From Mobula hypostoma (lineage: Eukaryota), in assembly GCF_963921235.1 (NCBI RefSeq), contig NC_086109.1:84568001-84632000 (forward strand): a stretch of DNA of 64,000 bases. The letters run 5' to 3'. The notes under the pieces were generated by a model that had not been told where the DNA came from, did not search any database, and saw nothing but the letters and a program-made list of their open reading frames with translations. The translations under genes and the position numbers were made by a program. Shown here one piece after another: positions 44,301-50,300 of this stretch. Positions within the stretch are counted from its first letter, which is position 1, and every line of letters starts with the position of its first letter.

Positions 44301-47300
44301 AGAGGAAGTTCACAAGGATGATTCCAGGAATGAAAGGGTTATCATATGGGGAATGTTTGATGGCTCTGGGTCTTACTCGCTGGAAATTAGAAGGATGAGG
44401 GGGGATCTCATTGAAACCTTTCAAATGTTGAAAGGCCTGCACAGAGTAGATGTGGAAAGGATGTTTCCTACGGTGGGAGAATCTAGGACAAGACAGCACA
44501 GCCTCAGGATAGAGGGGCATCCATTCAAAAGAGAGATGCGGAGAAATTTCTTTAGCCAGATGGTGGTGAATTCGTGGAATTGGTTGCCACGTGCAGCTGT
44601 GGAGGCCAGGTCATTGGATGTACTTAAGGCAGATGTTGATAGATTCTTGATTGGACATGGCGACAAAGGCTATGGGGAGAAGGCTGGGAAATGGAGTTGA
44701 GGAGGAGGAAAAAATGGATTTGCCATGTTTGCATGGTGGAGCAGACTCAATGGGCCAAATGGCCTAACTCTGCTCTTACATCTTATGATCTTATAAAACA
44801 ATATAGAAACAGGCTCTTTAGCTCAAGATGTCTGTACTGACTATTATGTCAAATTAAACTGATACCTTCTGCCTGCACATGACACATATCCCTCCATTTA
44901 GAAACATAGAAACATAGAAAATAGGTGCAGGAGTAGGCCATTCGGCCCTTCGAGCCTGCACCGCCATTTATTATGATCATGGCTGATCATCCAACTCAGA
45001 ACCCAGCCTTCCCTCCATACCCCGTGACCCCTGTAGCCACAAGGGCCATATCTAACTTCCTTTTAAACATAGCTAATGAACTGGCCTCAACAGTTTGCTG
45101 TGGCAGAGAATTCCACAGATTCACCACTCTCTGTGTGAAGAAGTTTTTCCTAACCTCGGTCCTAAAAGGCTTCCCCTCTATCCTCAAACTGTGACCCCTC
45201 GTTCTAGACCTCCCCAACATCGGGAACAATCTTCCCGCATCTAGCCTGTCCAATCCCTTTAGGATCTTATACGTTTCAATCAGATCCCCCCTCAATCTTC
45301 TAAATTCCAACGAGTACAAGCCCAGTTCATCCAGTCTTTCTTCATATGAAAGACCTGCCATCCCAGGAATCAATCTGGTGAACCTTCTTTGTACTCCCTC
45401 TATGGCAAGGATGTCTTTCCTCAGATTAGGGGACCAAAACTGCACACAATACTCCAGGTGTGGTCTCACCAAGGCCTTGTACAACTGCAGTAGTACCTCC
45501 CTGCTCCTGTACTCGAATCCTCTCGCTATAAATGCCAGCATACCGTTCGCCTTTTTCACCGCCTGCTGTACCTGCATGCCCACTTTCAATGACTGGTGTA
45601 TAATGACACCCAGGTCTCGTTGCACCTCCCCTTTTCCTAATCGGCCACCATTCAGATAATAATCTGTTTTCCTATTTTTGCCACCAAAGTGGATAACTTC
45701 ACATTTATCCACATTAAATTGCATCTGCCATGAGTTTGCCCACTCACCCAACCTATCCAAGTCACCCTGCATCCTCTTAGCATCCTCCTCACTGCTAACA
45801 CTGCCACCCAGCTTCGTGTCATCCGCAAACTTGGAGATGCTGCATTTAATTCCCTCATCCAAGTCATTAATATATATTGTAAACAACTGGGGTCCCAGCA
45901 CTGAGCCTTGCGGTACCCCACTAGTCACCGCCTGCCATTCTGAAAAGGTCCCGTTTATTCCCACTCTTTGCTTCCTGTCTGCTAACCAATTCTCCACCCA
46001 CACCAATACCTTACCCCCAATACCATGTGCTTTAAGTTTGCACACTAATCTCCTGTGTGGGACCTTGTCAAAAGCCTTTTGAAAATCCAAATATACCACA
46101 TCCACTGGTTCTCCCCTATCCACTCTACTAGTTACATCCTCAAAAAATTCTATGAGATTCGTCAGACATGATTTTCCTTTCACAAATCCATGCTGACTTT
46201 GTCCGATCATTTCACCGCTTTCCAAATGTGCTGTTATCACATCCTTGATAACTGACTCCAGCAGTTTCCCCACCACCGACGTTAGGCTAACCGGCCTATA
46301 ATTCCCCGGTTTCTCTCTCCCTCCTTTTTTAAAAAGTGGGGTTACATTAGCCACCCTCCAATCCTCAGGAACTAGTCCAGAATCTAACGAGTTTTGAAAA
46401 ATTATCACTAATGCATCCACTATTTCTTGGGCCACTTCCTTAAGCACTCTGGGATGCAGACCATCTGGCCCTGGGGATTTATCTGCCTTCAATCCCTTCA
46501 ATTTACCTAACACCACTTCCCTACTAACATGTATTTCGCTCAGTTCCTCCATCTCACTGGACCCTCTGTCCCTTACTATTTCTGGAAGATTATTTATGTC
46601 CTCCTTAGTGAAGACAGAACCAAAGTAATTATTCAATTGGTCTGCCATGTCCTTGCTCCCCATAATCAATTCACCTGTTTCTGTTTGCAGGGGACCTACA
46701 TTTGTCTTTATCAGTCTTTTCCTTTTTACATATCTATAAAAGCTTTTACAGTCCGTTTTTATGTTCTCTGCCAGTTTTCTCTCATAATCTTTTTTCCCCT
46801 TCCTAATTAAGCCCTTTGTCCTCCTCTGCTGAACTCTGAATTTCTCCCAGTCCTCAGGTGAGCCACTTTCTCTGGCTAATTTGTATGCTACTTCTTTGGA
46901 ATTGATACTATCCCTAATTTCTCTTGTCAGCCATGGGTGCACTACCTTCCTTGATTTATTCTTTTGCCAAACTGGGATGAACAATTGTTGTAGTTCATCC
47001 ATGCAACCTTTAAATGCCTGCCATTGCATATCCACCGTCAATCCTTGAAGTGTCATTTGCCAGTCTATCTTAGCTAATTCATGTCTCATACCTTCAAAGT
47101 TACCCCTCTTTAAGTTCAGAACCTTTGTTTCTGAATTAACTACGTCACTCTCCATGTTAATGAAGAATTCCACCATATTATGGTCACTCTTACCCAAGGG
47201 GCCTCTCACGACAAGATCGCTAATTAACCCTTCCTCATTGCTCAAAACCCAGTCCAGAATAGCCTGCTCTCTAGTCGGTTCCTCGACATGTTGGTTCAAA

Positions 47301-50300
47301 AAACCATCCCGCATACATTCCAAGAAATCCTCTTCCTCAGCACCTTTACCAATTTGGTTCACCCAGTCTACATGTAGATTGAAGTCACCCATTATAACTG
47401 CTGTTCCTTTATTGCACACATTTCTAATTTCCTGTTTAATACCATCTCCGACCTCACTACTACTGTTAGGTGGCCTGTACACAACTCCCAGCAGCGTCTT
47501 CTGCCCCTTAGTGTTACGCAGCTCTACCCATATCGATTCCACATCTTCCCGGCTTATGTCCTTCCTTTCTATTGCGTTAATCTCTTTTTTAACCAGCAAC
47601 GCCACCCCACCTCCCCTTCCTTCGTGTCTATCCCTCCTGAATATTGAATATCCCTGAACGTTGAGCTCCCATCCCTGGTCACCCTGGAGCCATGTCTCTG
47701 TGATCCCAACTATATCATAATCATTAATAACAATCTGCACTTTCAATTCATCCACCTTATTACGAATGCTCCTTGCATTGACACATAAAGCCTTCAGGCG
47801 CTCTTTTACAACTCTCTTAGCCCTTTTTAATGCTTGCCCTGGATTTGTCGGCCTGCCACTTTTACTTTTCCCCTTTGTACTTTTTGCTTCTACGCTCACT
47901 TTACACTCCTCTGTCTCTCTGCACTGGTTCCCATCCCTCTGTTGTGAACTAACCTCCTCACACCTAGCCGCTTTAATTTGATTCCCACCCCCCAACCATT
48001 CTAGTTTAAAGTCACCTCAGTAGCCCCCGCTAATCTCCCTGCCAGGATATTGGTCCCCCTAGGATTTAAGTGTAACCCGTCCTTTTTGTACAGGTCACAC
48101 CTACGCCAAAAGAGGTCCCAATGATCCAAAAACTTGAATCCCTGCCCCCTGCTCCAATCCCTCAGCCACGCATTTATCCTCCACCTCATCGCATTCCTAC
48201 TCTCACTGTCGCGTGGCACAGGCAGTAATCCCGAGATTACTACCTTTGCGGTCCTTTTTCTCAACTCCCTTCCTAGCTCCCTATATTCTTCTTTCAGGAC
48301 CTCATCCCTTTTCCTACCTATGTCATTGGTACCTATATGTACCAGGACCTCTGGCTCTTCACCCTCCCACTTCAGGATATCTTGGACACGATCAGAAATA
48401 TCCCGGACCCTGGCACCAGGGAGGCAAACTACCATCCGAGTCTCTGGACTGCGTCCACAGAATCGCCTATCTGACCCCCTTACTATCGAGTCCCCTATCA
48501 CAACTGCCCTCCTCTTCCTTGCCCTACCCTTCTGAGCTACAGGGCCAGACTCTGTGCCGGAGGCAGGGCCACTGTCGCTTCCCCCGGGTAAGCTGTCCCC
48601 CCAACAGTACTCAAACAGGAGTACCTGTTGTTAAGGGGCACAGCCGCCGGGGTACTCCTCATCACCTGCCTTTTCCCCTTCCCTCTCCTAACCGTGACCC
48701 ACTTGTCTGCCTCCCGTGGCCCCGGCGTGACCACCTGCCTTCCACTCCTCTCTATCACCTCCTCGCTCTCCCTGACCAGACGAAGGTCATCGAGCTGCAG
48801 CTCCAGTTCCGTAACACGGTCCCTTAGGAGCTGCATCTCGATGCACTTGGCGCAGATGTAGACGTCCGGGAGGCTTGGAGACTCCAGGGCCTCCCACATC
48901 CGACACCGAGAACAGCAAACTGCCCTCACAGTCATAATGCCCCTCTCCTCAAATAGCAACAGAAAATGAATGTCAAACCTTCCTCGCCTCGCCCGCTTCC
49001 GCCTAAGCCCGTTGAGCCGAAGCCCTTAAGTCTTCACTCTGCTCCCGGCTCACTCTGCAGCCCGCAAACTACGCTGCCCGCTCTATGAGGCTTTGTTCCT
49101 TTTAAATCTGCCGCGCTGCACTGCCCGACGTCACACGCCTGCGCAGTCCCGCCTCTCAGAAAGCCGTTGGAGAAAAAAAAATAACGAAAATTTCAAAAAT
49201 CTCTTTCTCGGCACTCCCACTCAGACTCTCAGACTCCTTCTTCGAATCAAATCCGAAGCAGGATGTCTGCCCTTTTAAATCTGCCGCGCTGCACTGCCCG
49301 ACGTCACACGCCTGCGCAGTCCCGCCTCTCAGAAAGCCGTTGGAGAAAAAAAAATAACGAAAATTTCAAAAATCTCTTTCTCGGCACTCCCACTCAGACT
49401 CTCAGACTCCTTCTTCGAATTTTTCTAGCATATTTATGTCTCTATCTCAAAGACTTGTAAACACCCCTGTTAAATCTGCTTGAACCACCAATCCTAGCAG
49501 CACGTTTGAGGCCCCCACCACTCACTGTGTAAAGAAACTTGCCTTGCACATCTCTTTTTAAACTTTCCTCTTCTCAGCTTAAAGCTATACCCTCTAGGAC
49601 TCAATATTTCTCCCTGAGGCCATATATACTGATTGCCAACCCTATTTATAGATTTAATTTTTATTTATAGATAGATTTTTATTTGGGCAAAATTACAACA
49701 AAAAAAAACATAGATATTCTTTAAATCAGACCGAAAGGGTGTAGGCTGAAGCTACAGCTTATTACGCCTACCCTTCTTACTTATACAACAACATATTTGG
49801 CGTCAATCATCACATCAAAACAAAAAAATTCATAATCTTCTGTCACAAAATCCAAATCCAAGTATCATTTATTTACATTACTCCCATTCATTTTAAACCA
49901 CGTATTTTTATATTTGTTCATGAAATTATCTTTAAATAATTTTTTAAACTGGTTAAGTGTAGTGCATGTGTTTAAATTCTCACAACTGTGCCATAGATTC
50001 ACCTCTCTGACTGAAATACAATGATTTTTTACATTCGTTCTTATCCTTTGTTTTTGAAATACACATGTTCCTCTCAAATCATGTTGACTTTCCCTCAATT
50101 TAAACAATCTTTGGATACTTTGTGGTAGCTGTCCATTTTTTACTTTATGCATAACTTGTATTATTTTAAAATCTGCAAAATCTCTGAACTTTAAAGTGTT
50201 TAGTTGAATAAATTTATGCCTCTTGTTATCTTATAAACCTCGCTCAGGTCTCCCCTTGGCCTCTGACACTCCAGGGAAAACATTCCAAGTTTCTCCAGCC

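Follow-up and report, generated by a model that had tools for sequence, protein, structure and literature searches.

Analysis of a 64,000-nucleotide (nt) stretch of the Mobula hypostoma genome (contig NC_086109.1, positions 84,568,001 to 84,632,000; hereafter the window, with positions counted from its first letter) revealed a long interspersed nuclear element (LINE) of the CR1 clade whose two open reading frames, ORF1 and ORF2, meet at a canonical slippery heptamer. Comparison of this junction with those of other CR1 lineages indicates that CR1 LINEs very probably use programmed -1 ribosomal frameshifting to produce an ORF1-ORF2 fusion protein. An initial annotation of the window, made from the sequence alone, had proposed a frameshift cassette at this place, and the proposal is supported by the conservation of the heptamer, by the -1 offset of ORF2 and by the stop codon adjacent to the heptamer.

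Reading frames at the ORF1/ORF2 junction

The junction lies on the minus strand of the window. In the ORF1 frame it reads ...GAG GTG ACT TTA AAC TAG AAT GGT TGG GGG GTG GGA..., and in the -1 frame TTT AAA CTA GAA TGG TTG GGG GGT GGG AAT. The heptamer T TTA AAC was confirmed to the base at 48010-48004, where it occupies the X XXY YYZ phase of ORF1, and the ORF1 stop codon TAG (48003-48001) follows directly on its 3' side. ORF2 is in the -1 frame, which is closed upstream by a TGA at 48019-48017; the overlap of the two ORFs measured 16 nt, close to the earlier estimate of about 15 nt. The ORF2 frame is open from 48016 to the stop codon at 44998-44996, a length of 1006 codons. As the initial annotation had pointed out, the first AUG in this frame occurs far in; it was located at about codon 206 (..VIMGDFN..; about 200 in the earlier count), within the Pfam endonuclease match. 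A further ATG, at 47999-47997, belongs to the third frame, in which a stop follows 10 codons on.

The sequence past the stop codon is rich in G, with GG at 47997-47996, G6 at 47993-47988, a T, and GGG at 47986-47984. A G tract had been described as starting 6 nt downstream of the heptamer. The G-rich sequence itself was found as described, but the part of it that is conserved across lineages, the tract G6-T-G3 at 47984-47993 on the minus strand, starts at 11 nt and not at 6; this tract is a candidate frameshift stimulator.

Conservation of the junction across CR1 lineages

Junction DNA was gathered by means of ORF1 protein queries, blind to the junction sequence. Exact-protein look-ups yielded nine loci, eight of which are CR1-type (L001-L007 and L009). 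A metagenome scan with an ORF1 alignment yielded 80 further loci, mostly from one sample. These loci match avian CR1 in both ORFs, with homologs named from penguin, pelican, duck, crane and swallow. All eight CR1-type loci were found to have NNT TTA AAC followed by a stop codon, with the endonuclease-bearing ORF in the -1 frame. They include Mobula hypostoma, Leucoraja erinacea, Stegostoma tigrinum, Mustelus asterias (TAA as the stop) and Pristis pectinata; the remaining loci are a contig encoding an ORF1 with 51% identity to a Xenopus tropicalis protein, the distant L007 (37% ORF1 identity) and L009, a Logan contig. The avian CR1 copies also have NNT TTA AAC and a stop codon, with ORF2 open in the -1 frame.

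TTTAAAC was present in 49 of 59 distinct junctions and the other ten had single-base variants of it, which is what decay of the copies would be expected to produce. All 59 junctions had a stop codon immediately past the heptamer, with TAG being the predominant stop (50 junctions), followed by TGA (seven) and TAA (two). A set of 14 representatives, consisting of lineages with flanks less than 70% identical, was made to address the non-independence of the junctions. In this set TTTAAAC was found in 13 lineages and GTTAAAC in one, the adjacent stop was found in all 14, and positions +1 to +4 past the stop were nearly random. The -1 frame was the long frame in all lineages compared. Both a constant -1 offset and a near-invariant heptamer across deeply diverged CR1 lineages, which the initial annotation had named as the support to look for, thus held.

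Two further junctions were observed in this comparison. L060 (680-689) has G_TTA_AAC TAG in an element with an apparently intact ORF2 of 833 codons. L093 (751-763) belongs to a distinct lineage with an esterase-type ORF1, which ends in TC A_AAA_AAC TAG and is followed by an ORF2 (VLYTNARSLIPK..) in the -1 frame. About 50 of 61 homologs of L093 have K-N near the C-terminus, most of them extending about 10 residues further, a comparison made at the protein level only. The A_AAA_AAC of L093 reads as a second canonical slippery heptamer, in an independent lineage and at the same place.

Selection on the RNA at the heptamer

The initial annotation had suggested leucine and asparagine as the last two residues of other vertebrate CR1 ORF1s too, and the homologs bear this out. 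In the search of elasmobranchs and amphibians 44 of 87 homologs ended in LN, as did 39 of the 51 with an intact C-terminal esterase block; in the avian search the ending was found in 80 of 120 homologs and in 36 of the 39 with that block intact. The residues just upstream of the terminal LN vary among homologs. The residue that directly precedes it can be T, G, L, Y, H, A or S, and the third base of its codon is T in 13 of the 14 lineages.

Analysis of codon usage in the same ORF1s revealed that TTA accounts for 13.9% of leucine codons, AAC for 45% of asparagine codons and T for 23% of third positions. Selection on the protein only would be expected to give T_TTA_AAC with a probability of about 0.014 per lineage, against the observed T at the preceding third position in 13 of 14 lineages and TTA and AAC throughout. 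Synonymous change at the heptamer is therefore suppressed, as had been anticipated. The comparative junction data place the observation beyond chance, and the anatomy of the junction, the phase of the heptamer and their conservation across lineages, synonymous sites included, are observed directly in these sequences.

Length of the G-run and copies of the family

The initial annotation had noted that a family consensus of five rather than six G would place the ATG at 47999 in frame with ORF2. No such consensus was found. The skate has GGGGCGAGGG rather than G6 and the same relation of frames is kept. The post-stop ATG is in the third (+1) frame in Mobula, skate and zebra shark, where a stop follows within 10-17 codons, and the other lineages lack it; reinitiation at this ATG was considered and rejected on these grounds.

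Contigs of four runs from two organisms were mapped to positions 47400-48700, and length differences were counted at 10% of depth or more. No one-base length variant of at least 10% of depth was found at the G-run in these contigs. Two length differences of at least 10% of depth were found, both of them in ORF1 near 48581-48596. Among the substitutions listed none fell between 47971 and 48026, a result weaker than that on length. The runs taken as putative RNA consist of contigs that may be DNA, and they indicate presence and not expression. The family was found to be extremely abundant: on this 1.3 kb, 36,140 contig pieces came from a single DNA run, roughly one in four of them at least 99% alike, and near-identical copies occurred in at least six coded organisms (A-F) of the run index. 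The near-identity of many copies suggests recent activity of the family.

Candidate stimulators

Analysis of the 14 lineages revealed G at positions +8 to +12 past the stop in 11-14 of them, followed by two variable bases and then by three or four G. Across all 59 junctions G occurs at +8 to +12 with a frequency of 92-97%. Read in the ORF2 frame, +8 falls on the third base of a variable codon (TTG, AAG, TGG, GAG or CAG) and +11 on that of a glycine codon that is nearly always GGG. The G-run is thus kept at third codon positions of ORF2, which argues for a constraint on the RNA. The stop codon that adjoins the heptamer, be it TAG, TGA or TAA, may serve as a 'shifty stop', and the adjacent stop and the G-run are the likely stimulators of slippage. 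L007, the only lineage with no G-run, has a hairpin 6 nt past the heptamer (z -1.7); this single case hints that the G-run and a hairpin are interchangeable as stimulators.

A G-quadruplex had been suggested as a possible stimulator, but it is poorly supported. A three-tier motif was found in none of the 14 lineages and a two-tier one is possible in only eight of the 14, the window copy among them, and a conserved RNA G-quadruplex is for these reasons an improbable stimulator. Of our whole proposal, how slippage is stimulated is what we are least sure of.

Proposed mechanism

According to the proposed mechanism, ribosomes would translate ORF1, a protein with a zinc finger, a coiled coil and an SGNH esterase that is 311 amino acids long in intact copies, and most of them would terminate at the UAG. 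A minority would slip one base back on U_UUA_AAC: in the P site, tRNA-Leu would shift from UUA to UUU, and in the A site tRNA-Asn would shift from AAC to AAA. The slipped ribosomes would read CUA GAA UGG.. and continue through the endonuclease and the reverse transcriptase. Slippage would be stimulated by the shifty stop and by the G-run 11 nt downstream, and the product would be an ORF1-ORF2 fusion of about 1313 amino acids at low stoichiometry, the Gag-Pol strategy known from retroviruses. A fusion of about 1310 amino acids had been predicted earlier; this size agrees with intact members of the family (311 + 1002 amino acids, about 1313) but does not apply to the window copy, in which ORF1 is broken.

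Points against frameshifting and alternative routes to ORF2

Several points weigh against frameshifting as the route to ORF2. In the window copy the zinc-finger/coiled-coil part and the esterase part of ORF1 are in different frames, with the break at about 48582-48600 and a one-base length difference from many family copies at about 48596 (27-62% of depth in the four runs). This locus is therefore unable to make the full fusion, and the window copy is a dead example of its CR1 family. A single avian-derived sample supplied many of the 59 junctions as decayed copies, and these are not independent. The avian copies and L004, L006, L009 and L060 have an ORF2-frame AUG upstream of the endonuclease, which makes reinitiation possible there. 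Prediction of nested folds gave no significant RNA structure downstream of the heptamer, and the hairpin or pseudoknot that usually acts as stimulator thus appears to be missing: RNAfold on 60 and 100 nt downstream gave a z of about 0 in 13 of 14 lineages, RNAalifold gave 0 pairs for 27 avian junctions, and Rfam gave no relevant match at the junction. The usual spacer between a slip site and its stimulator is 5-9 nt, and the G-run, which starts at 11 nt, lies beyond it. Finally, the occurrence and efficiency of slippage, and any part that the stop and the G-run play in it, are inferred from sequence.

The alternatives differ in what they make of these points. ORF2 could be made as a separate protein through AUG-independent termination-reinitiation or internal entry, with TTTAAAC and the stop being kept for some other reason, for example as a landing or retention signal for post-termination ribosomes. 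Translation of L1 ORF2 is indeed described as unconventional and AUG-independent (Alisch 2006, as cited in PMC3708506 and PMC5009743), and the lack of a predicted frameshift-type RNA structure downstream of the heptamer also speaks for such a route. We nevertheless consider it unlikely, since termination-reinitiation leaves unexplained a canonical heptamer that is in phase as X_XXY_YYZ, the constant -1 frame of an ORF2 that stays open through the heptamer, and a second lineage with A_AAA_AAC at the same place. No conserved start codon or near-cognate codon was found in the ORF2 frame near the junction in the lineages compared. This result, the A_AAA_AAC lineage and the missing or variably placed ORF2-frame AUG described below fit frameshifting by tandem slippage and are difficult to explain by reinitiation or internal entry. 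Conventional reinitiation at a downstream ORF2-frame AUG, or leaky scanning to it, would make the overlap of the two ORFs incidental. It draws on the avian CR1 copies and some other lineages, in which an AUG occurs 14-30 codons past the junction and before the endonuclease motif, and on L047 (1740-1752), an avian copy of the TGA subfamily that reads TTTAAAC TGATGG and so has an overlapping stop-start, TGATG, in the ORF2 frame. The pre-endonuclease AUG is, however, absent in five of the 14 lineages (the window family, skate, zebra shark, sawfish and L007) and varies in position where it is present; the TGATG of L047 is not shared by its seven subfamily relatives, which have TGAAGG or TAAAGG; and leaky scanning across an ORF1 of more than 900 nt is implausible. 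Taken together, this explanation is very improbable.

Two other explanations deserve hardly any credence. One is that the frame offset is due to chance or to an indel private to the copy, such as one extra G, and that the family really uses the ATG at 47999. The window copy does have at least one frame-breaking indel elsewhere, but avian CR1, the five elasmobranch species listed above and further lineages all have the same frames and the same heptamer, and the post-stop ATG is absent in most lineages. An artefact of G5 versus G6 is ruled out by the skate, which keeps the frames without G6, and by the lack of any G-run length variant of at least 10% of depth. The other, which we regard as just as far-fetched, is that transcriptional slippage or RNA editing shifts the frame. 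The A6 run of the A_AAA_AAC lineage could in principle slip during transcription; nothing of the kind speaks for such slippage on TTTAAAC, whose homopolymers are too short for polymerase slippage, and the contigs of the putative RNA runs have no indel at the junction, which is weak evidence because contigs drop rare variants. Programmed frameshifting thus stays the explanation that we favour for the CR1 junction.

Comparison with known recoding systems

Programmed -1 frameshifting on U_UUA_AAC is textbook knowledge for coronaviruses, arteriviruses and some retroviruses. The pro-pol slip site of human T-cell leukaemia virus and bovine leukaemia virus is U_UUA_AAC, that of equine arteritis virus is G_UUA_AAC, and in the gag-pol of Rous sarcoma virus A_AAU_UUA is followed directly by the gag UAG and then by a G-rich start. 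As in retroviral gag-pol and pro-pol, the first ORF of CR1 ends at or near a canonical heptamer, the polymerase ORF is in the -1 frame and a fusion would be expected as the minority product; as in Rous sarcoma virus, the stop comes directly past the heptamer. Unlike the retroviruses, CR1 is a LINE that lacks long terminal repeats (LTRs), its ORF1 is of the esterase type and not Gag, and a short G-run takes the place of a predicted stem-loop or pseudoknot. The ORF1a/1b junction of coronaviruses and arteriviruses has the identical heptamer, and the GTTAAAC of L060, the only heptamer variant observed in an element that looks intact, equals the arterivirus variant; these viruses differ from CR1, with which they share no homology, in needing a pseudoknot 5-7 nt downstream and in having a 0-frame stop that is not adjacent.

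Stimulator spacings of about 10-14 nt are known from porcine reproductive and respiratory syndrome virus (PRRSV) and the cardioviruses. Frameshifting in these viruses is trans-activated by protein, through nsp1beta and PCBP at a C-rich motif in the case of PRRSV nsp2TF and through 2A in the cardioviruses (PMC5009743). The likeness to CR1 is an analogy only and consists in an unstructured, sequence-specific element at a longer distance than usual, 11 nt for the CR1 G-run; the CR1 element is G-rich and not C-rich and has no known binding protein. Vertebrate examples of -1 frameshifting are PEG10/Edr and PNMA (Ma3), which are domesticated Ty3/gypsy genes (PMC5009743). These are retroelement sequences in which a heptamer-directed -1 shift joins two ORFs, as proposed for CR1, but they are single-copy host genes of LTR origin with pseudoknot stimulators, whereas CR1 is a multicopy LINE family.

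Among LINEs, reviews describe UAAUG stop-start coupling in SART1, an unconventional, AUG-independent termination/reinitiation in human L1, and 2A peptides, and otherwise call ORF2 translation unclear (PMC3894237, PMC3708506). SART1 and L1 face the same problem as CR1, namely how to express ORF2 when the two ORFs lie close together on one bicistronic RNA. They solve it with separate ORF1 and ORF2 proteins, whereas CR1 has no conserved start at the junction and its heptamer predicts a fusion. The non-LTR elements named in a large review of frameshifting are limited to HeT-A and TART of Drosophila and LINE-1 of mammals (PMC5009743), and recent CR1 surveys, including PMC13343379, do not discuss the junction. 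Our literature search, beyond whose reach the early CR1 papers (1997-2003) lay, found no prior description of frameshifting at the CR1 junction. The CR1 site would represent a familiar form of recoding, possibly with a stimulator of a new type.

L2-like elements

Analysis of the L2-like LINEs with an esterase-type ORF1, L011:1031-1040, L008:4287-4296 and L092:4281-4290 (Hemibagrus), revealed a different junction, at which ORF1 does not end in LN. In these elements ORF2 is in the same frame as ORF1 and a single TGA stands between the two, followed by CTAG in L011 and L008 and by CTGG in L092. UGA-CUAG is a high-readthrough context in vertebrates. This arrangement suggests that L2-type elements make an ORF1-ORF2 fusion by readthrough of the stop codon.

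A wider scheme can be put forward tentatively, and we hold it to be possible rather than probable. The whole CR1/L2 group might express ORF2 by recoding, as an ORF1-ORF2 fusion, with U_UUA_AAC and a stop in CR1, A_AAA_AAC in a sister lineage, and an in-frame UGA with CUAG or CUG, read through, in the L2 type. The CR1 stimulator might then be of a new kind, a short unstructured G5-N2-G3/4 tract that starts 11 nt past the slip site and works with the adjacent stop, perhaps by way of a bound protein or of contact with ribosomal RNA.

Anatomy of the element in the window

The element is a full-length CR1-clade LINE of about 4.5 kb on the minus strand, and all features described here are on that strand. 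Its assignment to the CR1 clade follows from the domain architecture, the 3' tail and the homology of its ORF1 to avian CR1 ORF1s. The 5' region contains a perfect tandem repeat of a 173-bp unit in 1.9 copies at 49098-49420 (Tandem Repeats Finder), which is a putative internal promoter or set of 5' untranslated region monomers. ORF1 was mapped by tblastn with P0001, the intact Mobula hypostoma ORF1 protein, as reference. Its N-terminal part, at 48582-48935, carries a Cys-rich zinc-finger-like motif and a coiled coil, as seen in the ORF listing, and matches residues 1-118 of P0001 at 95% identity. The SGNH/GDSL esterase part (48004-48600) ends in ..EVTLN and matches residues 113-311 at 99% identity, with a Pfam Lipase_GDSL_2 hit at E 8.5e-17. 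An ORF1 of the SGNH/GDSL esterase type has been described for canonical vertebrate CR1 (PMC13343379), and homologs of ORF1 are present in elasmobranchs, Xenopus and birds.

The ORF2 frame, at 44996-48016, comprises a junction linker, an AP endonuclease (Pfam Exo_endo_phos, E 3.5e-12), a reverse transcriptase (RVT_1, E 1e-33) and a CR1-type C-terminal region. The element ends at its 3' side in repeats of an 8-nt unit (3.4 copies at 44899-44924; Tandem Repeats Finder) and not in poly(A); an octamer-repeat tail is given as a hallmark of the CR1 3' end (PMC2612034). A short hairpin-forming inverted repeat, GGTGCAGG .. CCTGCACC, is located upstream of the octamer repeats at about 44925-44962 and could be a 3' hairpin recognised by the reverse transcriptase. 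No other CR1 copy with an ORF1 was found in the 64-kb window.

Annotation and significance

Several CR1 ORF1s were found under misleading database names (P0022, P0012, P0045 and P0047). Among these names 'SGNH/GDSL hydrolase family protein [Pseudomonas aeruginosa]' is likely to reflect contamination with fish or shark DNA, and '40S ribosomal protein S24 isoform X2 [Pristis pectinata]' and 'transmembrane protein 204 isoforms [Mobula birostris]' represent chimeric gene models. For annotation, the junction implies that models of CR1 ORF2 should extend ORF1 in the -1 frame and not begin at the first ATG of ORF2.

In birds, reptiles and cartilaginous fishes no retrotransposon is as prominent as CR1, which makes up 22-34% of elasmobranch genomes (PMC13343379). 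How ORF2 is translated from the bicistronic RNA of a LINE has long been asked, and the CR1 slippery site offers a concrete mechanism that can be tested with reporters. If the proposal is true, the -1 frameshift sites of vertebrates would gain a very large class, and the junction would indicate an unusual, unstructured G-rich stimulator. A Gag-Pol-like fusion would also change the understanding of ribonucleoprotein assembly and of cis-preference in CR1.

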